A stretch of 64,000 nt of DNA, taken from positions 1,240,001 to 1,304,000 of the forward strand of contig NIVC01000010.1 of NCBI GenBank assembly GCA_002269645.1, given 5' to 3'. The stretch is from Macrostomum lignano (lineage: Eukaryota). The notes below the pieces were generated by a model, which saw only the letters and a program-made list of their open reading frames with translations, made no database searches and was not told where the DNA came from. A program made the position numbers and the translations under genes. The stretch's first letter is position 1, and every line of letters begins with the position of its first letter. Shown in pieces: positions 27,763-47,445 of this stretch.

Positions 27763-29325
27763 GTGGAGCGGCCGGGTGGGTACCGCGCCCCTTTGAGGGT
27801 AGCCCACCAACCTTTTATCATGGCCTTCGAGCCGACTATGGATAAACAAGCTATTTCTAGGGACGGGGACCCTTCTAAACCCCAACCTCAGTCCGAAGGA
27901 CCGGCCGGCCCTGCTGGCAGATCCCAACCGACTGATTCAACTGTGGCAAAGGAAGGACCGGCTGGCTCTGCTGGCAGATCCGACCAGAGCTACCAAACTC
28001 AAAATACCCTAAGACCTGCCAGCTCCGCTGGTGGATCTAAGGGAACCGCGAGCTCTGAGCCTAAAGGACCGGCCAAATCTGGCAGATCCGATGAAGCTCA
28101 GCGGGCTCGGCTTGAGCGCAAACGCGCTAAACAACGCGCCAAAAGGCAGGCCAAGAAGGGAGCTGCGGGGGCCAAAGCGGCGGCGTCCACCATGGATGCT
28201 GAAGCGACTGGAGTCCCAAGGCAACCAGGCGGGCCGGCCGGTGGAAGCTCCAGTAGTTCAGCGGCGGCGCTCCCTGGAGCTGCTGCCGCGGCTGCTGAGG
28301 CCGAAACCACGGCGCAACAAATGGCCACTGCCAACAAGGAGGTTCCTTCGGGAGCTACCTTTGCGGCGAAGGCCAAGGCCAAAATCCCGGGAGTGATCAT
28401 CCAAGGTCGCGACCAGGACTGGACCACTGATCAGCTTCAAAAAGTGTGGAGTGCTGTTGACTCCTATCTGATTGAGCTGACTGTCGAGGAGGGAATCTCC
28501 ATCGGCGTTGAGCGGATGGTGCTGCGAAGCACATTCGTTCTTATTGCTCCTAGCAGCGAGGAGGACGCTCGGCGGCTGCTCCAGCGGCTACCGACGGTCT
28601 CCTTGGATGCTGACCTTGGTGGAGCTCTTTTTCTTCGCGAGGGCCAGCGTCCAAAGACGATACCCTATGTGGTTTTCGTCCCTGCTAAGAGCACCGCAGC
28701 TGGACCAGACGTTATTCGCCGGGTCCTACTGCGTCTGAACCCCGACCTCCCTGCTAGTGGACTGGTGTATCACCGCAAAGTCCGCAGGGGGGAGACGGGC
28801 AACTCAATTGTCCTCGGCCTTTCCAGCACTTGGGCGAGTCGGTACCCTAATGGATCCTCTTTCCAGCTGGGTGCCCTCAAGCTCAAGTTGCGCCGAGGAA
28901 AGTCTGCCAAAGGGAAGGCTACTGCCAACCCCGGCATCTCCGGCAAGAGCGGGGCGCAGTCTAAGGCCCAAGGAAAGGCGCAAGCCGATCCCAAAGCCAA
29001 AGCTGCATCTCGCCCCTCTGCTAGCAGCAGTTCGGCGACCGCGGTAACGGCTCCGGCCGAGCCCCGGGAACCAAACCTGCCAGTCGGAGAAGGAGTTGAG
29101 GACGAGGCCGGGTCTTCGGAATCCGAGCTCTCCTCGGCCACCTTGGTGGGGTCTGAAGGTAAAGATGCAGGTGAGGAAGCTTCCTCCATCCTGTCATCGG
29201 AGCCTGAGGACTCTGCTGGGGGGGCCGGTGGGGGTGAGGAGGCCATGGACGTCGACCAACTCCCATCTCCCAGTCAAGCCCCAGCGGCCTGGGACGAGGA
29301 CGATCTGTTGTCCAAGTCTCCTTGA
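27763..29325 (+). CDS. LINE ORF1 (first ATG at 27820); basic and low-complexity flanks around a central RRM/DUF4780-like core
   Basis: Long ORF ending 39 nt before ORF2; core VFVPAKST...RRVLLRLNPDL recalls LOA-clade ORF1; no CCHC knuckles seen. Confidence 0.8.
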   Translation: MERPGGYRAPLRVAHQPFIMAFEPTMDKQAISRDGDPSKPQPQSEGPAGPAGRSQPTDSTVAKEGPAGSAGRSDQSYQTQNTLRPASSAGGSKGTASSEPKGPAKSGRSDEAQRARLERKRAKQRAKRQAKKGAAGAKAAASTMDAEATGVPRQPGGPAGGSSSSSAAALPGAAAAAAEAETTAQQMATANKEVPSGATFAAKAKAKIPGVIIQGRDQDWTTDQLQKVWSAVDSYLIELTVEEGISIGVERMVLRSTFVLIAPSSEEDARRLLQRLPTVSLDADLGGALFLREGQRPKTIPYVVFVPAKSTAAGPDVIRRVLLRLNPDLPASGLVYHRKVRRGETGNSIVLGLSSTWASRYPNGSSFQLGALKLKLRRGKSAKGKATANPGISGKSGAQSKAQGKAQADPKAKAASRPSASSSSATAVTAPAEPREPNLPVGEGVEDEAGSSESELSSATLVGSEGKDAGEEASSILSSEPEDSAGGAGGGEEAMDVDQLPSPSQAPAAWDEDDLLSKSP

Positions 29326-29364
29326 TGGCCCTGGGCTCTAGCCAGATATTGCATTTAATACAGT

Positions 29365-30654
29365 ATGACTAAGCTCCACGCTGCCAAAGGAGCGACATTC
29401 TGTCTGCAAATAAATTTACAGCATTGCGTATCTGCGTCAGTAAATCTGATGAAGATTGCTGAGCTGTACAGGCCAGGCCTCATCCTGATCCAGGAACCCT
29501 GGATGCGCAACGGTAAGTTGCCCAACATTCCCTCTGGCTACTCTGATTTTTATGTGTGTGGCCCGGGGAACAGCCGCCCTAGAGCGGCTATCCTCGCTGC
29601 TAGCCATCTCCAGGCTTGGCTGAGGACTGATCTCTCTGATGGAGACCTTTGCGTCATCCAATCTAATCATTTCTCTCCGCGTACGTGTCTTGTTGCCTCG
29701 GTTTATATCCCAGGCGACAGAGACCCTGCTCCCGAGAGTTTACTGCGCCTTGCGCAGTACTGCGAGTCCCAGAACGCTGAGCTGTGCTTAGGGGGCGACC
29801 TCAACGCGCACCACAAGCACTGGGGCAGCAAAGATACCAACACTAGAGGAGAGGAGCTTCTGGCCCTCATCTCTAACACAAACCTCATGCTCTGCAACCG
29901 CGGCAGCACTCCTACCTTTAATAATGGCAGATGGACCGAGGTCCTCGACGCCACACTCGTTACCCCAAGACTCTTTGACAGAGTCAAGGAGTGGAGAGTC
30001 TGGTCTGAGGAGCCCTCCCTGTCTGACCACTGCTTTATCGCCTTTAATATCGCGGACACTAAAACCCAGTCTCCGATCACTTGGAGACGCAATATCCGCA
30101 ACACTGATTGGGCGGCCTACAAGGCTGCCCTTGATCTGCACCTGCAGGAACTCACGGACTTACGTCCGATTGAGACCTGCGAGGATGTGGATCATATGGC
30201 TGAGACGCTGACAGGTTGCATTATTGCAGCCTACGAAGCGGCTTGTCCTGCTCGCGCCTACAGAGGCAAGACCTCGGCGCCGTGGTGGAACCCGGAGCTG
30301 GGGAAACTCAGGCGGAAGGCCAAAAGCCTTCATCGCCGTGCCATGAAGACCGGAAACCCGGAGGACATGGAGCTTTTCCGGCAAGCCTCCCGCAATTTCA
30401 AATCTGAAGTGCGCAAGGCCAAGGAATGTAAGTGGCGCCAATTCTGCAATGAATTGGATCAAGACAGACCTACTTCTAGGCTTGTCAAGGCCCTTACAAT
30501 GGACAAAATGTCCAAATTAGCCATGATAAAAAAGATGATGGCTCTCTTACTAAAGACCCTGAAGAAGTGCTTCAGCATATGCTTAGCACATTCTTCCCGA
30601 GGGTACCTACTGCTAGACCGGAGCCCAACCATTCGATGGATGGAGCCACCCTAG
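29365..30654 (+). CDS. LINE ORF2, N-terminal part: apurinic-like endonuclease
   Basis: QINLQHC, LIQEPW, LGGDLNAHH..WG, PTF, VLDATL and SDH are APE motifs; the frame shifts -1 near 30528-30534. Confidence 0.92.
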   Translation: MTKLHAAKGATFCLQINLQHCVSASVNLMKIAELYRPGLILIQEPWMRNGKLPNIPSGYSDFYVCGPGNSRPRAAILAASHLQAWLRTDLSDGDLCVIQSNHFSPRTCLVASVYIPGDRDPAPESLLRLAQYCESQNAELCLGGDLNAHHKHWGSKDTNTRGEELLALISNTNLMLCNRGSTPTFNNGRWTEVLDATLVTPRLFDRVKEWRVWSEEPSLSDHCFIAFNIADTKTQSPITWRRNIRNTDWAAYKAALDLHLQELTDLRPIETCEDVDHMAETLTGCIIAAYEAACPARAYRGKTSAPWWNPELGKLRRKAKSLHRRAMKTGNPEDMELFRQASRNFKSEVRKAKECKWRQFCNELDQDRPTSRLVKALTMDKMSKLAMIKKMMALLLKTLKKCFSICLAHSSRGYLLLDRSPTIRWMEPP

Positions 30655-33104
30655 CGGCGGGCATTGTCACTGAAGACCTAATCGCTCGTGCGGTCAGAAC
30701 CTTCAAACCCTTCAAATCTCCTGGACCTGATGGTATCTACCCTGTTCTCCTTCGTGAAGCAGCCAAGATACCCTCGTTCCTGAGACTCACCCGCAATCTT
30801 ATGCGGGCCTCTATCCAGCTGGGATACGTTCCCAAAAGCTGGACTGAAGCTCGAGTAGTCTTTATTCCCAAACCTGGGAAGGGTGACTACCAAAGCGTCA
30901 AGGCCTTCCGGCCAATTAGCTTAACGTCAGCAATGCTTAAGCTCACTGAGAGGCTTATTCTCTGGCGGCTGCTCTCCTGCGAGCTGACAGCGATGCCCCT
31001 CAGCAATAATCAGCACGCCTTCCGTACCGGGAGGTCGACTGACAGCGCCCTGCATGCGATTGTCGAAAAGATTGAACGGGCGGTACTGGGTGACGGTTAC
31101 GCCCTGGCTCTCTTTCTTGACATTGTTGGCGCCTTCGACAACGTTATCTTTGAAGCGTTTCAGAGGGCCCTTCAAAATCGCAAAGCTCATGCTACCCTCA
31201 TACGGTGGATCATGTACATGATCTCCAACCGTACGGTCACTGCCCAACTTCTTGGGCAAACTGCCTCCACCAGAGTCTGTAAGGGTGGACCCCAAGGCGG
31301 AGTCCTCACCCCGACGCTCTGGAACCTGGTCATGGACGCTCTTCTGAGTGACTCCCGACCTGACCCCGTCTTCAAAGTCGGGTATGCTGATGACGTCACG
31401 GCCATTGTGGCAGGACCGTCTCCCAGCACGCTCAGGGATCTGATGCAGAGCTTTATCCGCAAAGCAGAATCCTGGGCCAATGACAATGGTTTGGAACTCT
31501 CTGAGCCCAAAACCGTTGCCATTATGTTTACCAGCAGACTACGCTGGAACATACGTCCTCTGCAGCTCTACGGCAGAGATATTGCCTTCGCGCACCAGAC
31601 CAGATGTCTCGGGGTCACACTTGACCACCGGCTCAACTGGTCCTTCCACGTGAAAGCAAAAGCTAAGCGTGCCTCAGCCATCCTGGCCCAGCTCCGACGA
31701 GCACTTGGCACTTCTTGGGGTCTATCCCCAAAGCGGCTTTGGTGGATCTATACTTCCGTAGTTAGACCTGCCATTACGTACGCCTCTGTTGTCTGGGTTA
31801 GCGCTACCCAGGTCAAAAGCCATGCAGACCTGCTCAACACGATCCAAGGCAGAGCGTGTAGGCTCATCTGCAACGCCACCAGGTCCACGCCCTTTGCTGG
31901 CATGGGGGCCTTTCTTAATCTTCCGCCTCTTGACCTCTTCATCAGGGGTGAGGCGGCTAGAACGACGCGGCGTCTAATTGATGCCGGCGTCAAATTCATT
32001 TACATGAGAGCACCTGCTAAGCGGAACCTTGTCCCGCATAGCGATCTGTGCCTCAACTTTCTCAACGAGTGTCAGGCCAATCGCGTCTTCACCGATGGCA
32101 TTGCCTCAACGCTCAACCTGAGACAGCGCTACTCCGTAGCTATCGACTCGCGCGATAACATCAATGACCATTGGAACCCTGGTGAGCTTCATTGCTACAC
32201 CGACGGTTCTAAGCAGTCAGCCAACACCGGCTTTGGTGTTGGAATCTTTCTGAACGGGAGGGTCATCGCTACCCACGCTCAATACACTGGGGTCAACTCC
32301 AGTGTTTTCCAAAATGAAGTTCTGGCCATCAGCTCCTGCACTGCAGAGCTTCTCGCCACTGGCGTTACTGGTAAGAACATCATTTTCCATTCGGACAGCC
32401 AAGCTGCCTTGCACGCCATCAGTGGCTGCAGCACCAACTCTGCTACAGTCCTTGACTGTATCAAACTCCTCAATGTGTTGGGTTCCGCCAACAAAATTAC
32501 CCTTAAGTGGGTTCCGGGGCATGTGGGGATCCGAGGAAATGAGTTGGCTGACACCCTTGCAAAAGTTGGTGCCTCCGGCTCCTCTCTCGGCCCCGAACCT
32601 CTTGTCCCGATTCCTGGCTGTGTCATCGACTCGCGCATCAAAGCGTGGATCAGGACTCAGCACCGCTCGACTTGGGCGAACCGCACGAACTGCAGGCAAT
32701 CCAGAGGCGCTGTCCCTCAGCCCTCTCACCAGCTCCGGAAGCTCCTCTTGCGCCTCTCGCGCAGAGACATCCGGGCTGCCACCATGACCCTCTCTGGTCA
32801 CGGCTGCTTCTCCAGGCACCAGTACCTGCAGGGCAACGCCACCAACGCCACCTGTAGTTTCTGCAACTCAGGTGACGAAACCGCTGAGCATTTCGTCAGC
32901 ATCTGTCCCGCCTTCACGCGGGCCAGACTCACTTACCTCGGGCCACACACATCTATTACTGAAGCGTGCAAACCCGAAAACTTTAATCAGCTCATGCGCT
33001 ACCTTCGGGCCACCCGCAGGGCTGAACTCTCCTTTCCAGAGAGCACCATAGCTGCTGGCGACACTGGGGGACCTCCCTGGGCGGCGCCAACCCTCCGTCC
33101 ATAG
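30567..33104 (+). CDS. LINE ORF2, C-terminal part: reverse transcriptase, RNase H, CCHC finger
   Basis: KSPGPDGI, RPISL, QHAFR.GRST, LDIVGAFD, PQGGVLTPTLW, YADD, LGVTLD; RNase H YTDGS...E..AI...DSQAAL...WVPGH.GI.GNELAD; CSFC...ETAEHF...C. Confidence 0.95.
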   Translation: MLQHMLSTFFPRVPTARPEPNHSMDGATLAAGIVTEDLIARAVRTFKPFKSPGPDGIYPVLLREAAKIPSFLRLTRNLMRASIQLGYVPKSWTEARVVFIPKPGKGDYQSVKAFRPISLTSAMLKLTERLILWRLLSCELTAMPLSNNQHAFRTGRSTDSALHAIVEKIERAVLGDGYALALFLDIVGAFDNVIFEAFQRALQNRKAHATLIRWIMYMISNRTVTAQLLGQTASTRVCKGGPQGGVLTPTLWNLVMDALLSDSRPDPVFKVGYADDVTAIVAGPSPSTLRDLMQSFIRKAESWANDNGLELSEPKTVAIMFTSRLRWNIRPLQLYGRDIAFAHQTRCLGVTLDHRLNWSFHVKAKAKRASAILAQLRRALGTSWGLSPKRLWWIYTSVVRPAITYASVVWVSATQVKSHADLLNTIQGRACRLICNATRSTPFAGMGAFLNLPPLDLFIRGEAARTTRRLIDAGVKFIYMRAPAKRNLVPHSDLCLNFLNECQANRVFTDGIASTLNLRQRYSVAIDSRDNINDHWNPGELHCYTDGSKQSANTGFGVGIFLNGRVIATHAQYTGVNSSVFQNEVLAISSCTAELLATGVTGKNIIFHSDSQAALHAISGCSTNSATVLDCIKLLNVLGSANKITLKWVPGHVGIRGNELADTLAKVGASGSSLGPEPLVPIPGCVIDSRIKAWIRTQHRSTWANRTNCRQSRGAVPQPSHQLRKLLLRLSRRDIRAATMTLSGHGCFSRHQYLQGNATNATCSFCNSGDETAEHFVSICPAFTRARLTYLGPHTSITEACKPENFNQLMRYLRATRRAELSFPESTIAAGDTGGPPWAAPTLRP

Positions 33105-34464
33105 CGACGCGTCGGCCGTTCAGGGACTAGCGGAATGGGCGCCCGCGCCTTCCCGCTGTGTCCCCTCCGGGACAGCCCTGCAGCTAAGTCAAAAGTCAGG
33201 GCTGTCGGCACGGTTCGTGGAGGCACTCAACTGCTACCGTTTACATACGTTGGCCCAGCCTCTGAGGCGACGGCGGAGGTTCGACTCGTTCACGGCAGCA
33301 GCGTCCATGTGTCTGTGCTAGCCAAGAACGGGGCAGGCCTGGTCCGGTTGTTCCACTCGCAGCCAAGCTTAATTGATCTCACGCCGCCAGTGATTGAATA
33401 TGTTACCGATGGCAACTCAACAGTGGATGGTAAACCTCTCGGATTGCAGGTGAGTTGTTTGCTTGTAGTGGATAGCTCCGCTATATACTTTCGACTACTT
33501 TTGAAAAAGGAAACTGTTGGGAAAGACTTCAGAGCAGGAGATGCTTGTCCTGCAGTACGAGTTGTATAAAATTGTTAAATCGAAAAAATCGGGTTTGTGA
33601 TAAGCAAACAAAACTTCGGGAGAATTCGTGCTTTGTCACGTCCTAAGCTTTGTCTGGAGCTTGAGCCATGTTAAGTAAAGTCACTTTTAACAGTTGAAGG
33701 GAATTTCACCTTTCAGGAGAGCGCTCATAAGCTGATTATTAGATTCAGCGCCAGCGATCCGGAAACTGGCCTTGCTGGCCGTTGCTTCTGGTGCTGTGGC
33801 TCCGTGCCCGGAACCTGCAATTTGGCTGCCTACATTCGCGTGCCTGACGGAGCGTTCTGGGCTACCAGGCTGATGCACGAGCCGGAAAGGCTGTCGGGCT
33901 CGCGCATCTTCAGCTCCGTTAGGTGTGGCAACGGTGCAGGACTGTGGACAGTAAAGTAAGTAGTTCATGGTTGCATGGTTGTATAGTAATATAGCTTTCT
34001 CTGGTGCTTGTGACGGCGTGTGAATATTAAATTCTGCTTTATTATTGCAACTGTGATTTACTAAATTGAACAGAAATTATGTGGTACACATGCCCTAAGC
34101 ATTCCTGTGTGGGTCCATCAAGGTTTCTTTGTGAAACTGCCAGGGAGACACCAAATGCATCATCCTACTGCTTTGCATGGGCAATGTACATGACGCAAGT
34201 ATTGTATATTGCGGCGGCAAGCACGCATATTGACCAGCAAATCTATGCCAGGTTATTTTTGTTTTTACACTCGTAAAAATTAAACTTAGGAAACGCAAAA
34301 GTTATAGTAGATCCTATCACATAGCTACAGACAACTCATTTTTAGTACGAGCTATATCGGACTAGCAATTAGCGCCCCGTGTTAGGGAGGCAACAAAGAA
34401 CGGAAAATTGTTTTAGTAAACTACATGTACATGCTGCTTCTGACCTTGCTTCAGCCATGACATT

Positions 34465-34516: not shown

Positions 34517-35202
34517 TTATAGTAAATATTCGAGTACGAGAGGTATGAGGTAGCTATTGAACTTCGGAGATGACCATGGTTCTGATTACTTTCTACCTCT
34601 TTTACTTACTTAGTAATTCACAACTATTAAACACTTTTCCAGAGTTTCCGCTGGAATCCTAATTTACAACGGCACACCTGACGCCTCCGCTGTTAAACCC
34701 CAAAAAACTAACGCAGAGTAAAAGCAAGTGGCACAAAAGACCGGCAGACGCGGCCCAGAAAGGGAAAACGAACCCCTTAAGCGACGAAATATATTGATTT
34801 TGTAATTTAAAAGAGAAAAAAATATTTTGCCAAAATTACGCCGACTCAGCGGCCGCGACGCGTGACTAAATAGCACAGAGCGGGGGGGAGGCTGCCCTAA
34901 GCCCTGCACGCACGCAGAGCACCAGCACCCCACCAACCCACCAAAGCGAGGCCGGACCGGTGCGGGGGGGTTTAAAACCAGTTAGAGTCAGATACCTGCC
35001 TCAAACTGACGTATTAAACCCCAAAAAACTAACGCAGAGTAAAAGCAAGTGGCACAAAAGACCGGCAGACGCGGCCCAGAAAGGGAAAACGAACCCCAAC
35101 ACCAACAGAAAGAGGGAGGAAGGAGACAAGCGTGTAAAATCAAATCAACGAGCCGCAGAAAAAATTAAACCAAGCCAAAAAAGCCAGGTCCAAGCAATAG
35201 CT

Positions 35203-37650
35203 CTAAGACTCGTACCTGAGCTCGGGATCTGCTTCAGCCGTCGCAACTCGCTCCGCTCGAGAACTGCGCCAGAGACCGGGGCTCAGCGCGAGCGACGCCT
35301 GCTCAAGCAACCGGGCCGCCGTTGACTCATTGAGGCAGGCCCTGCGCAGATCTTCCGGCTGCGCCTTGGCCCGGCCGAAGTAGCGCAGCAGAAACAGCAG
35401 CATGTGGCGGGGATGCGTCAGGCAGCGCGACAGCGGGTCGCTCAGCAGCTGCCAGGACCCCGGCATATGGTGAGCTCGAAACTGAAAGTCGTGCCTCAGC
35501 GCTGCCAGAGTGGCCGTTTTGAGCAGGGTCATGACGATCGGGTTGCTGGAGGCACCGCGGTTGATGGTGCCGACCGCCGCGCTGCTGTCGACGTAGCAGG
35601 CCACCTTGCCGCCGGCCAGCTGCTCCTGGAACAGAATGATGGCGAGCAGCGGCAGTACCGTCTCCTTGGCGTTGATGTGCTCGCTCAGGAAGATGCCACC
35701 GGCGTCACTGCAGAAGTCGACGAGGCGGAACTCGCGCTGGCCATCAGAGGTGCTCAGGATCATGCCACCGGCACTGACGCAGGCGTCCGTCTCGACCGCT
35801 GCCAGCACTCGTGCACGCCGCCACAGCTTGTCGGTCGGGAACACTGGGATTGCATGCTGCCAGAACTGCAACTGGGCCAGTAGCTCGCCGCGCACCGGTA
35901 CTCGATGATGCTGCTCAGGAATAGCGATGGTTATCTCCAGGAGCGCGCGAAGCAGGGCCTTTGCAGGTTTGGCCACTTTGCAGAACCAGTTCAGTTTGCC
36001 GACTAGGTGCTGAAGGCGACGTTTTTGCAGGCTCTTCGAGTTGGCGCAGTCCTGGAGAAGTTCTCGAAGGCCGTCCATCTTCTCGGCGGGCAGTGACAGC
36101 AGGCCAGTCAATGTGTCGATCTGCACACCCAGGAAAGTGACCGAAGTGGCTGGGCTCTGCGTCTTGGCCCAGTTGATCTCAAAGCCGAGGCGCTGCAGGG
36201 TGACCAGCAGAAAATTGTGCAGCTGCAGGCAGACCTCGTAGTCCCGGGCAGCTATGCAGAAATCGTCGAGGTATGCGATGACGACGAATTTGGACAGATG
36301 CGAGAATTGCCTGTACATAAAGCGCTTGACAGCTTGCGTTAGGCGGTGGAAAATGTTGACTGATGCCGCCGCACCGAATGGGAGTCGCGTGTCAACCAGA
36401 TAAGTGGGCTGACCGTCCAGCTCGAACGTCCACCGGAGCCCCGTCGCCTGATAGCAGTCTGGGTGCACCTGAACACTTCGGTAGGCGTGGCGTAGGTCGA
36501 CCTTGCTGATGAACCAGCCTGGTGCCAGCTGCCTGGTGAGATCCTCGACATTGGCAAACTTCATCTTCTGGCGGGGCTTGTACAGATCGTTGAGGCTGTT
36601 GCCCTGTGGCGCGGACGCGTCGTGAATCAGGCGGATGGCGCCGTCTGCCTTCGGGACGGCGCCCAGTGGGCTGATGATGGTCGGCCTGGCGATGCCCAAG
36701 TCAGTTGCGCTGATGTACCGGCCAGCCACGACCTCCTCTCTGATCCGCAGCTCAACGGCATTCCGATTTGCCTCGCAGCAGGCGGATGCATGATTTTCGA
36801 GCTGGGATTCGCTGGTCGGAGCCGCGTCGGTGATGCGAAAGCCATCGCGAATTCCCGCGATCAGAAACTCCGCGTCCGAGTCTCCGAGCAGGACTGGTGT
36901 CCAAGCAGCAGTTAACAGCGGCCAACGTTTTCGGAGTGCAGCCACCGGGCCGGCAACAGGGCCGGCAGCAGCGCCGGCAGCGGGGCCGGCGGCAGGGCCG
37001 GCGGCAGGGCCGGCGGCAGGGCCGGCGGCAGGGCCGGCGGCAGGGCCGGCGGCTGGGCCGGCGGCAGGGCCGGCAGCAGGGCCGGCAGCAGGACCGGCAG
37101 CAGGGCCGGCAGCAGGACCGGCAGCAGGGCCGGCAGCAGGACCGGCAGCAGGGCCGGCAGCAGGGCCGGCAGCAGGACCGGCAGCAGGGCCGGCAGCAGG
37201 ACCGGCAGCAGGGCCGGCAGCAGGACCGGCGGCAGGGCCGGCAGCAGGAACGGCAGCAGGACCGGCGGCAGGAACGGCAGCAGGACCGGCGGCAGGGCCG
37301 GCAGCAGGACCGGCAGCAGGGCCGGCAGCAGGACCGGCGGCAGGGCCGGCAGCAGGGCCGGCAGCAGGGCCGGCAGCAGGGCCGGCGGCAGGGCCGGCGG
37401 CAGGGCGAGTGGCAGGGCGAGTGGCATGGCGAGCGGCAGTGCGAGCGGCAGGGCGAGCGGCAGGGCGAGCGGCAGGGCGAGTGGCACGTCGAGCGGCAGG
37501 GCGAGCGGCAAGGCGAGTGGCAGGGCGAGCGGCAGGGCCAGTGGCAGTGCGAGCAGCTGTCTCGCATGGAATTAAAATTTTGGACTGTCTATCAGACGCC
37601 GTCCGCTTAGGGCTAAAACTGGTGCCGCCGCGACCCGCCTCTTTGCTCAG
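35203..37650 (-). CDS. DIRS-type RT + RNase H, with an upstream repeat-encoded (PAAG)n linker; no ATG start of its own
   Basis: [39 protein letters not shown]; RNase H ETDA, HINAKE, VDS. The frame is open from about 37650 to 35203; the track start at 36945 is a GTG. Confidence 0.85.
36948..37555. repeat. 12-bp GC-rich minisatellite (~50 units: GGCCGGCAGCAG type, then GGCGAGYGGCAG type) inside the Ngaro-like element
   Basis: Directly visible; gives long repetitive ORFs on both strands. Confidence 0.95.
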
Positions 37651-38692
37651 TTTTTTGATTCGGCAGCCACCGAGCTGTGTTGCAGCTTTGAGTGGCTCCC
37701 TTCGCAGATGCGGCAGATGTGGGCGAAATTGCAGGTGTGTCTGTGACAGCCTTTGTTGCTATTGAACAAGCCGCAGATGACCTGTCCAGCGGATGACAGC
37801 TGGCCCCTGCTACGGTGACCCTGGACTCCTTGACCGACCGCGACTGGGCCAGCAGCTCGCAGGTTTTTGGGCGCCGTCATATGCTTGATGATGAGGTTCA
37901 GATCGGGGCTGTCCCAGTCGCGCTGTCGCGAGTGCTGCTGCAGCCTCATGTCCTGGTCGTACTGGAGCACCACCTTCCAGTCGTAGCCAGCGTCGATCAG
38001 CTCGCCGATGTGGATGTTAAAGTTGAGGTAGGCGTTCAGACTCTTGCAGTCGGGCTGTCCATCCGTACCGGGCGCCACCAGCTGGCCGGTCTCCAGCAGT
38101 CGCTGCATGATCCGCGCGTTGGCAGCCACCCACTGGCCGAAGTTGACTCCGGACAGGCTCGGCGTTGCGCCTTTCAGAGTCAGGCGACCACGTTCCTGTG
38201 TCAGCCATCCTCCGACTGCTGCCTCTCGTCCAGAAATTCCGGGATGAGCAGCGCTGATGGTGGCCGCTGGGCTCCGGCCGAATCAAACCTCGGTTGTCGG
38301 CTCTGGTCCCCGAACAGGCTGGCGTAGATGTCCGGCCCTCCTCTGGCCAGCGGGGGCGATGCGGCGCCACTGCGGATCGACTGCACTTCATCCCGCAACT
38401 GGGCCTCAGCCTTCTGCAATTTAAGCAGCTCGATCCTCTTCTGAGTCTGCCGAATCTGCGCTTCTGTGGCCTCCTCCGCTGGCGCAGCCCGGCGCACGTC
38501 ATCCTCGTCCTGGTCGTCGTCACCGTCGTCATCGCTGGGAGCTCGTTCGGCCTGGCTTGCAGCGAGCAGGCGGCCTATCAGCTCTTCTTTATTGCCACTT
38601 GTAGGTAAGGCCTTCTCGCGTAAGGCATCTTTGAGGGCCTGCACGGTCATGCTGCCCAACGTAGAGTCCATTGTGAGTGCAGTGCTTGGCAA
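37647..38692 (-). CDS. Gag-like ORF of the Ngaro-like element: N-terminal SAP motif, C-terminal C3H/CCHC-like zinc finger, one frameshift near 38205
   Basis: MTVQALKDALREKALPTSGNKEELIGRLL (SAP); LLIPEF; after a -1 shift LTLKG..LSGVNFGQWVAANARI; CGLFNSNKGCHRHTCNFAHICRICEGSH. Confidence 0.8.
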
Positions 38693-39286
38693 ATCAGGCA
38701 GGCTAAAAATATTTTGCCAAAATTACGCCGACTCAGCGGCCGCGACGCGTGACTAAATAGCACAGAGCGGGGGGGAGGCTGCCCTAAGCCCTGCACGCAC
38801 GCAGAGCACCAGCACCCCACCAACCCACCAAAGCGAGGCCGGACCGGTGCGGGGGGGTTTAAAACCAGTTAGAGTCAGATACCTGCCTCAAACTGACGTA
38901 CAAAATTAAGCGTCTACAGTCCAATCGTTTCCCCATTTCTTGCTAAGGACGCTTTCGTTGGCAACGCATCGGCGCTTATGCTTAGCTGGTGGGGATTTTT
39001 AGACCAAGTGGAGCTGGCAGATTATCAGATCCGACTGATAGACGTTGGGCAGAGTTTTGTAGCACGCGACTGGCTCAGTGTTGGCGGCTCCAATGTGCAG
39101 TCGTTGCGCTTCGGTGACTTGTCGCTGGGCACCGGCAGAATCTACCGAGTCGAGGTGCGGGCAGTGAACGTCCTTGGTAAAATGAGCGAAACTGTAGCTC
39201 ACGAGTTCCGAGTTGACGGCAAGCCTCCTAAACTGACAGGTTGGTTGCTTCATTGAGTTTTCGAATTGATATCATACTTGCATAAA

Positions 39287-39505
39287 GGGGTTGTAGCCCA
39301 GTGGTCAGAGCGTCGGACTCACGACTTGAAAGTCGGGGGTTCGATTCCCGATCCCACTGGAACAATTTTTGTCCTTGAGCAAGACACTTAACTCTGCATT
39401 GCTTCAGTTCCCACCAGCTGTAAAATGGGTGCCAGCATTAGCTGGGGTAACTGAGGGTGTGTGGCGACCCCCCATGGACTGAACAGCCGGACGCAGCCTT
39501 CCGAT
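39287..39505 (+). mobile_element. tRNA-derived CORE-SINE, copy 2
   Basis: tRNA-like head plus GTCCTTGAGCAAGACACTTAACTCTGCATTGCTTCAGTTCCCACCAGCTGTAAAATGGG; 3' tail shared with the copy at 15260. Confidence 0.85.
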
Positions 39506-41449: not shown

Positions 41450-43057
41450 TCACTTTTCCTCAGCCTCCGCCTTCTTGGCTTCAGCAGTCTTGGTGGCAAT
41501 CGCGGCTTTCAGTAGCTGCTCCTCTGAAAAGAACATTCCGTGAATACCGGAGGGCACTGAGACGCCCTTGAAGTCGACCTTGGCCACCTCAGTCATGTTC
41601 TTGGCATCCAGAATGACAAGGAACAGAGACCGTTGATCCACAGTGCCCACTACAGAGGCGAGCAGAAGGCCATGGTCTTCACTACAGCGATCAGGATGCT
41701 CAACGAATATCGCCTCGGATGGTTCGCAGCCTGGAGCATTCCATTGCAGAACTTCCTCGGTCTGCCAGTCCAGCTTCACGATGCTGGAGTTGGACGATGC
41801 GGCAGCAGACGCCTCGGTGGTAGACATAGATTTGCCAACACCATAGCCGTAGCGGTATGGCTCACCGTTGTACCGGTAGTTTATCTGGGGAAACTCGATG
41901 GCCAGTCGACACGCAGGCTCCGTGCATTTCACGATCTCAGTGCTGCCAAGCTTCAGTCGGTAGCGACGAAGCGTCACATCTGTCTTTGGCAGCTCACTCA
42001 GCTGCTGCATCTCTTTCAGCGACAGTCGCTTAATTAAATCTCCAGACTTGTAGGCGCTGAGATCCATGACGATCTCTACACTTCCGTCCTTGCATTCCAC
42101 CTCGTATGCGTTCATGTGATGGAAGGTGAAAAAGGCCTCGGCTGTTAGCGTCTGCACTAGCTTGCCGTCGGCGCGAGACACGACGTGAAGCAAAGAGCCG
42201 TAGCCGTCATGCCAGTTCAGACAGTCTCCGTAAGACAAACCGAATGTTCCTGCGGCTATGAGGCGCGGAATGTTCAGCGCTAAAGGCGACTCAACCAGAA
42301 CTAGATAGTTGCGAGTCATGGCGAAGCTGTGAAAATACGCTGGATTGAAGCGCCACCTCGACGGTATTTTTGCTACAACTTCGGCTTTATCCAAGCCTCC
42401 GGGCGGGATGCGTGCGAATATGTACTGCGGACCCTCACGATCACGGAATGCTGTGCCGACGTTCAGAACACTGCCGTTCGACTCAATGTGCGGGTGTGCC
42501 GTCACTGTGTTGATTGGTATTACCTTGTTCAGGTCGACTTTTTCCAGACGGTCTAAAGTCCTGGGATCGATTCGGTTAAGAAAGTTGGTCTCGGTAGTGG
42601 CGTAAACTTGATCTCCAATCGGAAAGATGTTCACGAAGGTGTTGTCAGACACCATCGACCTTAGTTTTGCCTCCTCCTCGCTTGGCCAGAAATAAGAAGC
42701 GAACCGTCCTAGCCACGATTTGCACGGATCTGGAAACGTCCGCGTGCCGAACTCGCTGACAACGATGCGCTTGTACGCCATGTTTGTCGTGTACGCGTCC
42801 GAACGGAGGAATTGGCTAGTGAACTCCACCTGACCGTTCGAGATGCTGAACTTTCGCAACAGTGCCAGCCCATCGAAGTAGTGATGGTACTGAGTGTCGC
42901 CCACTTCAAACAGACCCGGTCCATTCCGAATGAGGCTGCCGTTCAGCCAGGTGGGTACAGAGCCTCCGTCTCGGACTACTCCTCGCACTGGTTCGGTGTT
43001 CTCTCCGCTGGCAGACGTGTACAAAGCGGCACCCAGGTTAGTTAATTTATCGGACAT
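41450..43057 (-). CDS. Carotenoid cleavage oxygenase (BCO1/BCO2/RPE65/NinaB family), intronless
   Basis: 535 aa; WLNGSLIRNGPG, HYFDGLA, EFGT..FPDPCK, DNTFVN; four iron-ligand His in AHPH, YFHSF, FHHMNAYE and GIHG. Confidence 0.96.
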   Translation of the reverse strand: MSDKLTNLGAALYTSASGENTEPVRGVVRDGGSVPTWLNGSLIRNGPGLFEVGDTQYHHYFDGLALLRKFSISNGQVEFTSQFLRSDAYTTNMAYKRIVVSEFGTRTFPDPCKSWLGRFASYFWPSEEEAKLRSMVSDNTFVNIFPIGDQVYATTETNFLNRIDPRTLDRLEKVDLNKVIPINTVTAHPHIESNGSVLNVGTAFRDREGPQYIFARIPPGGLDKAEVVAKIPSRWRFNPAYFHSFAMTRNYLVLVESPLALNIPRLIAAGTFGLSYGDCLNWHDGYGSLLHVVSRADGKLVQTLTAEAFFTFHHMNAYEVECKDGSVEIVMDLSAYKSGDLIKRLSLKEMQQLSELPKTDVTLRRYRLKLGSTEIVKCTEPACRLAIEFPQINYRYNGEPYRYGYGVGKSMSTTEASAAASSNSSIVKLDWQTEEVLQWNAPGCEPSEAIFVEHPDRCSEDHGLLLASVVGTVDQRSLFLVILDAKNMTEVAKVDFKGVSVPSGIHGMFFSEEQLLKAAIATKTAEAKKAEAEEK

Positions 43058-46000
43058 TGTGTACTTCTATCACAGCTTGATGAATCGTTGAAGTTCTTGA
43101 CTTTTTGGTGCTTAACAGTTAGCTCCGAATTATTTCGAATAGGTAGGTGTGACGATTGCAATTTTATGTGCTTGAAGCTGGCCTGGAGTTTGAACTTTGA
43201 AATCTAGCAAGTCTCACTCTTTACACCCACAGCTATGGGCGCACGCTTATCTAGTGTGTCTCTCTTCTCTCTCTGCCCCTCCTCTGTTTCCTGCAATTTT
43301 CGTATGCTGCATACAAACTCTGTACTTTTCTACCGTACACTGAATCATGTGACCTAAATGTACATCCAACTATTTGCCTTCCCTTAGCGCACAGTCTTAT
43401 AGTTATTGCGTCTAGCTGCAAATTAACTGCTGTAGCTGCTGTATAGCAAAATGCATTTATGCCCATACCGCCTTGTTTGGACCGCTTCAATATTTCCGCT
43501 GTTGCTAGATATGGCTTGATTCAAAATAGGTTTGCAAACAGATGTACTTTGGTAGTCGGGACCTTTTATGATAGTCTGGTAACAAACTTCGAAACAAGTT
43601 TTTTATTATCGTATTTTTGTGCTTTAAATTCTCTGTTTTTAAGCTCCGTTGGCTGGTCTCTTCATGGATGGTTGACATGGCTGGTCTCAAGATAAAGCAC
43701 TTTATTAATATTGTCCATTAGAAGTTACTGTGTCATTTAATATAAAACGGCTGCTAACTTCTAATGCGTCCTTGCACTTTGTACTGTGACATTTCAACGT
43801 TTATTCGATCATCCCGATATAATTAAAATGGGATGCGAGACTCAAACAACACAGCATCATGCAACTGGCTTTACGTGTGTGTTCATGTTTTCAGAGCATC
43901 TACATGCATGCACCCATGAACTAATTTCCATTGTTGAATTTACAAGAACAAAATATTGCACTTAATGGCTTCAATTGCCTGTACATGTATAATGCCACTA
44001 AAAAATAAAAAAGTAAAAACTGCGCGTACAATTAAATATGTGTATGCACTTTTACAGCTGTACTTACAGTGTAGGTTCGCAGCTAGAACAAAAATGCATT
44101 AAAAATACATGTACTTCGTGTATTTGCATGAGAATACCTGTGCAAGCTCATGGGCTCTGGCTCTGAAAAAGTGCAGCCACCAGGCCTCGTCCCCTAGACT
44201 TTGTCCGCCTCTGGATGCGGCAGTAGCTGACGTTGTGACAAATCCCATTACCTAGAAAGCGGGCCTGGGTTGTATTAGAGTTACACACTTAAAGCGTAGC
44301 CGCCACTACTAGTCACCTGTGCAGCGGTGACAACTCCCACTAACGGGACGGGATCGAGTCCCGGTCTGTCGTAGACTAAGGTTCTTGACTCCAACTGTGT
44401 TAGGCAAACAAAGGACAGTCTACTCAGCGCTGGAAACGAAAACTTTTTGCATTGGGGTAAATTTAGTTGGTAGGCGATTCTAAGGATAAAATTCCCTCCT
44501 TAGCTCCAGGATCTCAAGGATAAATAATAAATAACGCAACTCTAATCTCTTTCCTCATATTAATGGATGGGTTCGATCCGGCAGGGGAGATGGGGAAGTG
44601 CAGTTCCCAGAGCTCTCTCGTGGTGCACATACATGTATCTTACAGGGACTTACTTAGAAATATTGTTACTGCTGTGATTATTTGGTTGGACTCGGCTAAT
44701 ACTCGGTGATTTTGCAGGATCAGTTAATTAATAAGATGATCAGAGGATTAGCATCAGTTAATCCGGTAAGATTCGGTCTCGCTTTCGGTTTCGGTTTCGG
44801 TTTCGGTCTCGCGCGGTAACAACCAACAGGTAAAAACAGCCGGGGAGCCAAACAAGTTGCCGCTGAGGGTATTTTCTTTGTTAAGTATATAGCGTTTCAG
44901 CCCCTAGCCGGGGCTCTTCCGTTAGTTTTTTTAGAATTTAATTTTAACGCGTGTACACATCCCCCGTCAATTTTTAAGGGCTCAAAACGGGCTGCTATTT
45001 ATAGCCCTGAGAGACCGCGCAATCACGTGAGCGTGATGTGTGATAGCAATATTGAAGGTCATAAACCTCTCCCTGACCTGGAGAAAAATGATTAATAATG
45101 GAGGATTACATAACAGGCGGGAAAAATCTTAGCGAGATAGAGGTTCATCAAACTGTCACGCGAACGAATGATTTCGAACAGTACTCGTATAGAAGCTCTA
45201 GAAGATGGGGTTGGTGCGCGGGGGAGTGGGTGGGTGATAAGCAATGATAAGCGGAGGCACAGCGACCACGTGGGAAGGATGGTGCACAAAAATTAGTGGG
45301 GAGGCCCAGGACATGTCTTACATCATATAATGTATGTAGATGTGACGCGCTATCGCATACAGGAAAAAATATGTGTCTAAATATATCCGTCTGCAGATGC
45401 TACACATGTATATACTACTACATGTGCGCTGCTAAATTTGAGTCTGCGTAGCTGACTGTAATGGAACTTTGAACAAATTTCAGTATACTTAAGTCTAGCA
45501 TACTCTTACTAAACTATAGCGTAAACATAGATCGAGATCATTGAAACAGCTGAAAAAACTTATTATACCTCTGTAGTGTAGTTCCTTTGGAAACCTTACG
45601 CATGAGAATGTATAGCTGTCTGTAACTGTCTGTAACTATTTGTAGTATTTAAATATACATTCCAGCTCTCTATAACAATATTATTGTAATACAGGAAATT
45701 TTAATATATATGGGCAATAATGTTTTTGACCGGCCTTAAAAGCCATTTACAGTTTACTGTTAACGAGAGCCAGCACGTAGCGCTGAAGCTAGCTCAGTTA
45801 AGGTGTCAAATGTCAAAATTAATTAATGCATGTATTGGACACACTGTATAGCCACCTGCGTCTTAACGTGTACATGAAGCCCAACCACCTGAGAACATCA
45901 CGTATAGCTTTTTTAAAACAGCGACACATGCAAACTGGAAGTTTAAATTGTGGTATGGACGCAATATTGACTCAGACATCGATCGTGCTGGAGTGCAGCT

Positions 46001-47445
46001 CCAACTTGTTTCTTGGACTGACAGACTTAATAGCTTTAAGTATATGTGCCCGTATACATGCACTTGCTGCTCATCTTAAGTTCGATCCGATTAGCGTTAT
46101 TTAAAAAATGTATTTTTAATTATCGGATAAAGTAGATTAACAAGTAGAAAGAACTAGCTCAACAGTGAAGTATTTAATTTTTATCTTTTTGGTTCAAACT
46201 TATAAAAAAATCAGCAGGTATTGCAATTTTCTTCCCATATTGGATTTTATTTCTTCTCGAGATGGAACGCGGGTATTATTCAATTTTTCTCAACTGGACC
46301 AATTTTCGCTTTTACGTGTGTACATGCGACTTTTTCACATTGTTCTAGATTATTTTTTTATGCACAATTGAGAATTACTATCAATAAGTTTATAGTTAAA
46401 ATGAAATATAGAAAATTATGATTTTTTAAATAACTATGATTTTCTCCATAGAATTATTTTTTAACTTTAGACTTATATAATATAATATTAATTTTTTATT
46501 TTTAATGCCACATTCTAAAATTACAAAACAGAACGATACTGCCACTGAAAACAAACTTATCAAAGTTTAGGTTAAAAGAGACTTAAAATAGTTGTATTAG
46601 AATGGAAATTTATTTATAAATATTTATTAATTTTAGGCCTACTTTGTTTTAAAGCCTGTCCTAGGCCAATAGGCAGTTCTTTTTTCCTCCTAACTAAGGC
46701 CTACCAAGTACCAAACCCAACTCAATTGATCTAGTTTTGATGACTACTACAATAGCATTGATTAAAATGTTTTAGTTTTGGATAAAAAATACTATATACT
46801 AAATATACTAAATATTATATACTATATATAATAATAATATATATAGTATATTTTTATTGAGTTTATATAATGTATAAAGAAAAAATTATTATTAACCATA
46901 CATGCCCAACCTTAAAGTTTCACCTATCTGGTTCTACTTAGTTTTGTCCAGATTTGCAACTTAGTTCCTCCTAATTGTGACTTAGTAAGTTCTTCTCAAT
47001 TGCAACTTAGTTCCTCCTGATTGCAACTTAGTTCCTCTCAATTGCAACTTAATTCAATTGCAACTTAATTTTCACTTTGTATATGACTTTTCTTGCCTTT
47101 TTCTCTTTTCTCTTTCTCTCTCCTCTTTCCCTTTCTCTCTCCTCCCTCTTTTCTTTTCCTTTTCTCTTCCTCTCCTTCCTTCTTACCTCAATTTTTTGTT
47201 TTTTTTGCATTTTTCAATTTTGCGACTTACCTTGGCTAGTGGCCATTTCACATGTCTAGTTTGGATAGGTCAGATGCCTATTGGGCATATATGTTATTAA
47301 TTGTTCTTTAATAAACTCTTAGTGTTGGCAGTTTAAAAAACTATATTGACATACCAATGGCAATCTTTTATTATTATCATCAATTTAAAATAATGATTTT
47401 TCAGATTGTTTCTTCAAGTGTTATATGTAATTCATTGTCTATACA

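Follow-up and report, generated by a model that had tools for sequence, protein, structure and literature searches.

A putative tyrosine recombinase-less derivative of a Ngaro-type retrotransposon in an exon of Macrostomum lignano

Insertion site and structure of the element

The analysed window, a 64-kb stretch of the Macrostomum lignano contig NIVC01000010.1, contains an exon of an FN3-domain gene that is interrupted by a 4208-bp retroelement. The left part of the exon, read from the sequence (34644..34692, plus strand; VSAGILIYNGTPDASA, ending GCT G|), and its right part (38901..39238, plus strand; CA AAA ..., AKLSVYSP...KPPKLT), which is followed by a GT donor, border the element on either side, and the preceding exon of the same gene lies at 33702..33956 on the plus strand. 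In tblastn searches with P0200, an FN3-domain protein of M. lignano from UniRef, the right part was found at 95% identity and the preceding exon at 96% identity. Joining position 34692 to 38901 gives a single reading frame ...TPDASA|AKLSVYSP..., and in P0200, which is 95% identical to the joined exon, TPDASA|AKLSVYSP is contiguous with no residue gained or lost at the insertion site. This paralogue can be taken as a protein-level empty site, and its uninterrupted sequence agrees with the exact restoration of the host frame (DASA|AKLSVY) that had been proposed in an earlier, sequence-only reading of the locus. Read from the left exon part into the element, the host frame meets a stop after 9 codons.

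The element occupies window positions 34693-38900 and its coding strand is the minus strand, along which the features follow the order A1-gag-RT/RH-B1-A2-41 nt-B2, where RT/RH stands for reverse transcriptase/RNase H. The 5' terminal repeat A1 (196 nt; 38705..38900, minus) and A2 (196 nt; 34818..35013, minus) are identical (196/196), and so are B1 (84 nt; 35014..35097, minus), which adjoins A2, and the 3' terminal repeat B2 (84 nt; 34693..34776, minus; 84/84). A2 and B2 are separated by a spacer of 41 nt (34777..34817, minus), and relatives have 96 and 157 nt in the same place. Neither the A nor the B repeat occurs again within the 64-kb window. The internal junction of B1 with A2 (...GGGGTTTAA|TACGTCAG...) equals the end of B2 joined to the start of A1, i.e., the B2|A1 circle junction. 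The 5' end of the element is at 38900, where the A1 homology breaks off precisely at the host junction, and the 3' end is at 34693. No target-site duplication (TSD) is present at the element ends, and both the ends and the lack of a TSD can be stated exactly because the flanking bases differ immediately between the copies of each repeat. The terminal repeats are direct repeats, and the ends (A versus B) bear no relation to each other; terminal inverted repeats were not reported in the repeat analysis of the window. For DIRS1-like elements, a tri-nucleotide common to the junction and the target has been proposed; such a tri-nucleotide was not seen here or in the relative L003.

The copy looks very young, with the repeats identical at 280/280 positions and the 851-codon RT/RH frame intact with all catalytic residues. 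The matching repeat pairs, the reproduction of the circle junction by B1|A2 and the lack of a TSD, all claimed in the sequence-only reading, are borne out by these measurements. Its description of the element as complete and pristine holds for the repeats and the layout but not for gag, which a frame change of one base divides in two. A 12-nt tandem repeat makes up about 600 bp of the element and is a further caveat to these two adjectives.

The ends also bear on the mode of insertion. If the lineage inserted its cDNA through host repair or recombination, no tyrosine recombinase (YR) would be needed, in keeping with the lack of a YR in the element and with the fact that none was found in trans among the listed YR-profile matches or in the window. 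However, the ends match the B|A junction to the base, with neither a TSD nor a target deletion, which is the signature of site-specific recombination at a circle junction, and the cDNA of DIRS-1 was not integrated in cells without the element proteins (PMC7192593). We therefore regard YR-independent integration as hardly credible.

Gag and reverse transcriptase

The gag gene is distributed over two frames; the relatives have one gag ORF. Its N-terminal half (38204..38671, minus; ATG at 38671) encodes a SAP domain (Pfam, E=1e-9) and an acidic and coiled-coil region, and closes at a stop (38201-38203) that arises from a frame change of one base near 38205-38212. The C-terminal half (37647..38282, minus; stop 37647-37649), which is in the -1 frame relative to the N-terminal half, contains the conserved gag core and a Cys/His zinc-knuckle-like motif, and matches the gag of the relatives L001, L003 and L002 with BLASTP E values from 2e-19 to 2e-12. 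Just before the gag stop, in the gag zero frame, lies the heptamer A AAA AAC (37650..37656, minus), the sole heptamer of its kind on the coding strand of the element. Its sequence and phase make it a candidate -1 frameshift site into the RT frame; a stable stimulatory RNA structure 3' of it was not supported (z +1.55).

The RT/RH open frame of 851 codons from stop to stop (35203..37758, minus; stop 35203-35205) comprises an RT domain (Pfam RVT_1, E=4e-17), RNase H and a 73-aa tail, and has 79 homologues with E values down to 1e-112. The catalytic residues D150 and D227/D228 of the RT and D387, E428, D453 and D503 of RNase H fall in invariant or near-invariant columns, and RT/RNase H is apparently functional. 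N-terminal to the RT domain, the 12-nt tandem repeat found by TRF (36947..37554, minus; ~50 units) is translated in the RT frame as (AAGP)n and adds about 200 aa ahead of the RT. The protein P0001, which represents a second M. lignano copy, also begins inside this repeat; at the same position the closest relative, L004, carries another repeat (AHLNPPA). The tails of the relatives measure 18-82 aa save for one long outlier, with a median of 52, and the 73 aa of the element fall inside this range. On the RT frame, Pfam recognised no domain beyond RVT_1 or after RNase H, a methyltransferase (MT) included.

Absence of a tyrosine recombinase

A YR directly follows RT/RH in four relatives, L001, L002, L003 (from Oculina patagonica) and L004. 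The RT/RH of the element is 33-38% identical to that of gag-RT/RH-YR elements with the same repeat plan, and 54% identical in the RT to the closest of them, L004. The repeat structure was resolved in two of the four relatives (L001 and L003), which share the plan A1...YR-stop|B1|A2|spacer|B2, in which 0-5 nt separate the YR stop from the start of B1. Where the relatives have a YR ORF of 790-1090 nt, the element has a non-coding, AT-rich gap (43% GC) of 105 nt between the RT stop and B1 (35098..35202, minus) that gives no YR signal; the sequence-only reading had put this distance at about 100 bp.

Pfam found no YR in the three coding-strand frames of the element, and a family profile built from 81 sequences found none in its six frames (best E 1.9) or in the 64-kb window (best E 0.12); as a positive control, the YR of L004 scored 8e-55 with a family model from which L004 was excluded. 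A YR hidden in an overlapping or opposite frame, which the sequence-only reading had named as an HMM result that would speak against it, was ruled out by Pfam on X-masked coding-strand frames, by a 4-sequence HMM and by the 81-sequence HMM. Two weak matches in the window were rejected: one at 6051-6371 (4-sequence HMM, E 0.005) was gone with the 81-sequence model, and one at 20344-20598 (E 0.12) is without the catalytic motif. We interpret the element as a YR-less derivative of a Ngaro-type element of the DIRS order, in which loss of the YR is more parsimonious than its primary absence, because 4/4 relatives examined, the closest included, carry it.

An assembly artefact would mean that the YR region was collapsed or dropped by the assembler, or that the gag shift was introduced by it, in an element that is in truth complete. 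Long-read assemblies often contain single-base indels, of which the gag shift could be an example, and the 600-bp tandem repeat in the element is hard to assemble. However, a clean loss of ~1 kb of unique coding sequence is atypical as an assembly error, and the stretch between the RT stop and B1 consists of unique sequence without repeats, which makes this explanation very improbable.

It had also been suggested that the tail of the RT ORF is a stump of the YR N-terminus. The tail does align with the N-terminus of the L004 YR (shuffle p ~0.0035, uncorrected), but it competes with an alignment to the RT-frame tail of L004 (p ~0.03), and the family YR profile is blind to stumps of up to 45 aa; the proposed origin of the tail is thus only suggestive. 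When breakpoints were sought by comparing the RT tail and the 3' region with L004 at the DNA level, only the RNase H end aligned, and the post-YR sequence of L004 had no significant match in the 3' region of the window (p 0.21).

Relationship to other retroelements

Split direct repeats ordered A1 ... B1 A2 B2 are the Ngaro-like plan (PMC6681497, PMC3783388), and the absence of a methyltransferase domain after RNase H sets Ngaro apart from DIRS1-like and PAT-like elements (PMC3266345, PMC7192593). With Ngaro-like elements the present one shares the A1-B1-A2-B2 split direct repeats, gag followed by RT/RH, insertion without a TSD, and the lack of methyltransferase, protease and DDE integrase. 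It differs from them in lacking the YR, the defining enzyme, and in its SAP domain at the gag N-terminus, the ~200-aa (AAGP)n before the RT and the split gag. Because no YR was found, we file it as a YR-less Ngaro derivative by descent and not as an autonomous member. The RT/RH matches carry no family names, and the element is placed with Ngaro by its architecture. The Ngaro/PAT-type architecture assigned in the sequence-only reading is supported, and the RT/RH is homologous to that of gag-RT/RH-YR elements with the same split direct repeats.

Other classes were considered and rejected. The repeats would fit a PAT-like element, but the element has no MT, and the RT ORFs of the relatives are short as well. 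A DIRS1-like element is ruled out by the direct terminal repeats and the missing MT domain. LTR retrotransposons have identical LTRs at both ends, a protease, a DDE integrase and a TSD of 4-6 bp, whereas the present element has unrelated ends and lacks a PR or IN domain as well as a TSD. Troyka (PMC12440569) was looked at and proved irrelevant. Our literature search found no paper tying M. lignano to DIRS, nor any mention of Ngaro in the 15 papers that best matched Ngaro together with flatworms.

[quoted passage not shown] It differs in its inverted terminal repeats with an ICR, its methyltransferase domain and its overlapping ORFs, whereas the M. lignano element has split direct repeats without an MT. 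SIRE of Trypanosoma cruzi, a non-autonomous derivative of VIPER, also lacks a recombinase and keeps the terminal repeat sequences of its parent, by whose proteins its mobilisation has been proposed (PMC6681497). SIRE is however only ~435 bp long, corresponds to A2+B2, is non-coding and reaches a high copy number, whereas the M. lignano element is 4.2 kb long, keeps gag and RT/RH, and is known from only two copies. Among LTR retrotransposons, Dasheng with its partner RIRE2 (cited in PMC9210276) and the LARD and TRIM elements are internally deleted forms that retain their cis-acting ends and rely on the proteins of a partner. These belong to another order, in which a DDE integrase and a TSD stand in place of a YR and TSD-less insertion, and, unlike them, the present element is without its integration enzyme only.

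Second copy and origin of the deletion

P0001 differs from the element by 4 aa over the 596 aa they have in common, and its flanking exons are absent from the window, which places it at a different locus. It is known as a spliced gene-model protein, and the comparison, which ends at the RT tail, follows the tail of the element up to three codons before the stop. The C-terminal 77 aa of P0001 represent neither a hidden YR nor sequence from the element's locus. Exact-protein look-ups with P0001, the 580-aa RT ORF and the gag C-terminal half retrieved no further M. lignano copies, RT-pattern scans of metagenomes and viral contigs gave no match, and no M. lignano YR was present among the 120 listed (named-source) matches of the YR profile search.

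The sequence-only reading had seen in the element a semi-autonomous family of Ngaro/PAT type without a YR. The type and the missing YR hold, but with one other copy, and no partner among the listed YR-profile matches or in the window, the family itself is unproven. [quoted passage not shown] However, gag is frame-shifted in this copy, so that it shows no obvious sign of being selected as a semi-autonomous unit, only two copies are known, no partner turned up among the listed YR-profile matches, and selection cannot be read from the intactness of so young a copy. We consider such a lineage possible rather than probable.

Alternatively, a complete autonomous element may have inserted with its own YR and later lost ~0.8-1 kb with the YR ORF. 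Surveys of YR retroelements find mostly truncated or incomplete copies (PMC3783388, PMC9210276), this copy already has another lesion in the gag frame change, and there is no demonstrated partner or second deleted copy. Such a history would leave the same final structure, which also counts against the explanation that we favour below. On the other hand, the insertion looks very young, with 0 differences in 280 repeat positions, the YR was removed cleanly while the RT ORF, its stop and B1 are intact, and the diverged copy P0001 agrees with the RT tail until 3 codons before the stop. A deletion after integration appears rather unlikely.

Our preferred explanation, held with moderate confidence, is that the element is a recently integrated, internally deleted Ngaro-type copy that had lost its YR and was supplied with one by another copy in trans. 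It is most likely an ordinary deletion derivative that integrated with a borrowed enzyme. The cis-acting parts are all kept, namely A1, the B1|A2 circle-junction template and B2. From the observed anatomy, the exact TSD-less ends and the absence of a YR we infer all steps of the mechanism. RNA starting in A1 would yield Gag and, probably via a -1 shift on A AAA AAC at the gag stop, a Gag-(AAGP)n-RT/RH fusion. During reverse transcription, the internal B1|A2 junction would be used to rebuild the ends, giving the B2|A1 junction, which the YR of another, autonomous copy, acting in trans, could recombine with the target without a duplication. In this way the copy would have landed antisense in an exon of one FN3-domain gene paralogue, truncating it. 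The RT of DIRS-1 works in trans, and the other DIRS-1 proteins apparently do so too (PMC7192593); SIRE, the non-autonomous relative of VIPER, is a second precedent (PMC6681497). What speaks against this explanation is that no YR-bearing conspecific partner appeared among the 120 listed YR-profile matches or in the window, and that P0001 is the only other copy known. The deleted form might, tentatively, be a propagating non-autonomous lineage; that this is a one-off copy, with the deletion arising in the very reverse transcription that produced it, seems only slightly less likely.

Significance

We hypothesize, with considerable doubt, that M. lignano harbours an active Ngaro-type lineage that is without its own YR, keeps gag and RT/RH, and hijacks the YR of a related autonomous family. 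If true, it would be the first integration-only parasite to be described in the DIRS order. Should many independent YR-less copies exist, they would document the natural trans-use of a retroelement tyrosine recombinase, which has so far been supported only by the DIRS-1 experiments and the SIRE/VIPER pair, and they would offer a naturally occurring donor/helper pair with which to study the integration step of this order, about which little is known. For now, a copy that has lost its recombinase is to be expected among retroelement insertions. The value of this one lies chiefly in its being a clean specimen, with exact ends, an uninterrupted paralogue and perfect split repeats. It gives a base-resolution view of Ngaro-type entry with no duplication, no loss and no visible core common to the junction and the target, and it represents a recent exon insertion in a model flatworm with heavily duplicated genes.

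Structure of the element and its insertion site

The element is a single retroelement of 4208 bp (34693-38900) with genes on the minus strand and a GC content of 62.5% versus 43% in the flanks. A repeat search of the window found two direct-repeat families in it, both on the minus strand: the 196-nt repeats A1 (38705-38900) and A2 (34818-35013), identical at 196/196 positions, and the 84-nt repeats B1 (35014-35097) and B2 (34693-34776), identical at 84/84; neither has further copies elsewhere within the 64-kb window. The order on the coding strand is A1, gag, reverse transcriptase/RNase H (RT/RH), B1, A2, a 41-nt spacer and B2, which forms the 3' end. B1 touches A2 at ...GGGGTTTAA|TACGTCAGTTTGAGG..., thus the internal sequence is exactly that of B2, the 3' end, joined to A1, the 5' end. 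At 4/4 repeat edges the adjacent base is not the same in the two copies, so the ends are defined to the base, and there is no target-site duplication (TSD). The sequence-only reading had described this architecture with its matching repeat pairs, the B1|A2 circle junction and the missing TSD, and all three are borne out here.

When 34692 is joined to 38901, one open exon results (acceptor at about 34641-34643, GT donor after 39243), whose translation is VSAGILIYNGTPDASA|AKLSVYSPIVSPF...KPPKLTG. The single match of the 130-aa joined-exon peptide in the protein search was P0200, a M. lignano UniRef 'Fibronectin type-III domain-containing protein' with 95% identity, whose exons lie by tblastn at 33702-33956 and at 34644-34692 plus 38901-39238 on the plus strand. 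P0200 carries ...TPDASAAKLSVYSP... uninterrupted across the insertion point, so this paralogue or allele serves as an empty site at the protein level. It confirms that the insertion falls inside an Ala codon (GCT G|CA AAA), with no gain and no loss, and the exact restoration of the host frame claimed earlier holds. In the disrupted copy, the element lies antisense to the host gene and the host frame enters it to stop after nine codons.

Coding capacity

From its ATG at 38671, gag first encodes a SAP domain (38570-38665, minus strand, Pfam E 1e-9) and then an acidic/coiled-coil region. SAP domains bind DNA/chromatin; none was detected when the gag of three relatives was scanned. The C-terminal half shows homology to the gag of relatives (E 2e-19 to 2e-12) and ends in a Cys/His knuckle, with the stop at 37647-37649. 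A one-base change near 38205-38212 (...QQSEDG* / ...GGWLTQERG...), where no slippery sequence was found, puts the two halves in different frames; in the relatives, gag is one continuous ORF. We take it to be either a real lesion of one base or an indel introduced in assembly. The copy is thus not fully pristine: the split repeats, called pristine in the sequence-only reading, are perfect, but gag is not intact. As a side observation, gag of L002, a related metagenomic locus, gives a weak match to a CCCH zinc finger, below the cut-off (19.3 vs 20.5 bits), rather than to a SAP domain.

RT/RH has 851 open codons (37758-35206, stop 35203-35205) and lies at -1 relative to gag, with an overlap of about 110 nt at the 3' end of gag. 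The gag stop comes straight after A AAA AAC (37656-37650, minus strand), which is in the zero frame of gag and in the correct phase and is the sole such heptamer on the coding strand of the element; this textbook slippery site suggests a Gag-RT/RH fusion by -1 frameshifting, and no stable RNA structure was predicted downstream of it. A 12-nt tandem repeat of about 50 units (36947-37554, minus strand), open in all six frames, encodes (AAGP)n over about 200 N-terminal residues of the RT ORF. In L004, the closest relative by RT, the corresponding place (1-90) is taken by another in-frame repeat, AHLNPPA, thus a repetitive linker ahead of RT seems to be a trait of the sub-clade of the element and L004. 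All catalytic residues of RT and RNase H lie in alignment columns that are invariant or nearly so.

The missing recombinase

Between the RT stop and B1 lie only 105 nt, of 43% GC and non-coding character. In the four related loci examined, RT/RH is followed by a tyrosine recombinase (YR) or YR-like ORF: 298-347 aa in L001 (ENA metagenome assembly; YR-like), 262 aa in L002 (metagenome; a 4286-bp unit present three times in tandem; weak Pfam Phage_integrase match), 352 aa in L003 (Oculina patagonica chromosome) and about 327 aa with HSLRRGG...GGW...Y motifs in L004 (JGI metagenome; 54% RT identity). L001 and L003 share the repeat plan of the window, with A1 before gag and A2 abutting B1, then a spacer (96 or 157 nt) and B2, and B1 begins 0-5 nt past their YR stop. 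Judged by position, the YR of the relatives sits exactly where the window has its 105 nt, in agreement with the gap of about 100 bp reported earlier.

A YR in an overlapping frame had been named as a finding that would speak against the sequence-only reading, and none was found in the element or the window. Pfam gave no YR in the three coding-strand frames of the element, and a 4-sequence HMM none in the six-frame translation of the whole window; the best hits of an 81-sequence HMM were E 1.9 in the element and E 0.12, without the catalytic motif, in the window. As a control, an HMM built without L004 was run on the L004 YR: E was 8e-55 for the whole protein, 1e-8 for the N-terminal 120 aa and about 0.004-0.008 for the N-terminal 60-80 aa, and fragments of 45 aa or fewer were missed. 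The absence of a YR is well supported.

The tail of the RT ORF had been proposed as a stump of the YR. Past the ADxxSR motif, counted in the 35 relatives where it was found, the ORF extends 18-82 aa (median 52; plus one 416-aa outlier), so the 73 aa of the element are within the usual length. Homology to the L004 RT tail is clear for the first 17 residues, and the rest has two mutually exclusive alignments to L004: one with the YR N-terminus (20 residues against ARLADSLALLAFAPATWKASR; score 43; 7/2000 shuffles as good, p ~0.0035) and one with the RT-frame continuation (p ~0.027). DNA-level comparison with L004 placed no deletion breakpoints. A YR stump is possible on these alignments, but unproven.

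In the protein search, the RT ORF is 99% identical to P0001, a M. lignano UniRef gene model that starts inside (AAGP)n and shows four substitutions in 596 matched residues. It departs from the element at ...ADPELR, where the window reads AG|GTACGA, plausibly a splice donor; its next 77 aa are not encoded anywhere in the window and show no YR signal. This match and the foreign 77 aa mean that at least one further, slightly diverged copy with the same RT tail is present at another locus. A YR profile search of a large protein collection gave 229 matches, and the 120 listed contained neither a M. lignano YR nor one with more than 36% identity to the L004 YR.

Classification and history

The Ngaro-type class assigned earlier is well supported by descent and architecture. 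A-pol-B-A-B repeats are the basis for such a placing (PMC3783388, PMC6681497), and a methyltransferase is present in DIRS1-like and PAT-like elements and absent from Ngaro elements (PMC3266345, PMC7192593). The element shares with Ngaro-like elements these repeats, which are also the plan of its relatives, and the lack of a methyltransferase and of a TSD, but differs in having no YR. Since no YR is encoded, it lacks the defining feature of the order and is a YR-less derivative, not an autonomous member.

In the accepted model, the YR of an element recombines the rebuilt junction with the target (PMC3266345, PMC7192593). The ends match the junction templated by B1|A2 to the base, hence integration is taken to have followed this usual route, which under the model would be YR recombination of the rebuilt junction. 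Either the element belongs to a propagating non-autonomous lineage supplied with YR by a partner, as the sequence-only reading proposed, or it is a one-off copy that suffered the deletion during its own reverse transcription and was integrated by the YR of its parent; taken together, we consider these two histories rather probable. They are favoured over integration of a complete element with later loss of the YR, which we regard as unlikely, because the repeats show zero differences across 280 positions, the YR alone was cleanly removed, and a second copy has the common RT tail.

Action in trans is plausible. The RT of Dictyostelium DIRS-1 acts in trans, and transformed DIRS-1 cDNA was integrated only where the cells made DIRS-1 proteins (PMC7192593). 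SIRE is considered to derive from VIPER and to be non-autonomous (PMC6681497), and most YR retroelements in genome surveys are truncated or incomplete (PMC3783388). A semi-autonomous family is a possible reading. The element is a new, well-preserved, recombinase-deleted case of a known kind of element, of modest weight unless the deleted form is shown to be widespread genome-wide.

Other features of the locus and its relatives

L002 (1-12441) consists of three perfect head-to-tail gag-RT-YR units with a period of 4286 bp; such an array is expected if circles integrate at the junction of a copy already in place, or it may be the assembly of a circular or concatemeric form. In the host gene region just upstream of the element lies a long non-LTR (LINE) retrotransposon (27763-33104, plus strand) in the orientation of the FN3 gene, with ORF1 of 520 aa, an AP endonuclease of 429 aa and RT plus RNase H of 845 aa, the latter two ORFs overlapping at 30567-30654. 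An ORF at 33135-33569, beginning about 30 nt past the LINE end, is FN3-like in look, possibly a host exon. A tRNA-like sequence (39287-39356, plus strand; Rfam tRNA 34.6 bits, gathering 29) lies in the intron that follows the disrupted exon and, since ARAGORN did not call it, is probably a tRNA pseudogene or the head of a SINE derived from a tRNA. Two neighbouring host genes are one for a BIR plus RING (IAP-like) protein (144-2183, plus strand) and an intronless ORF of the RPE65/carotenoid-oxygenase family at 41450-43057 on the minus strand (Pfam E 3e-107). Sharp GC contrasts occur at 46000-48000, 50000-52000 and 54000-56000; the stretch of 64% GC at about 50-51 kb, flanked by 27-32%, has long ORFs on both strands with no Pfam match and may be another GC-rich mobile element.
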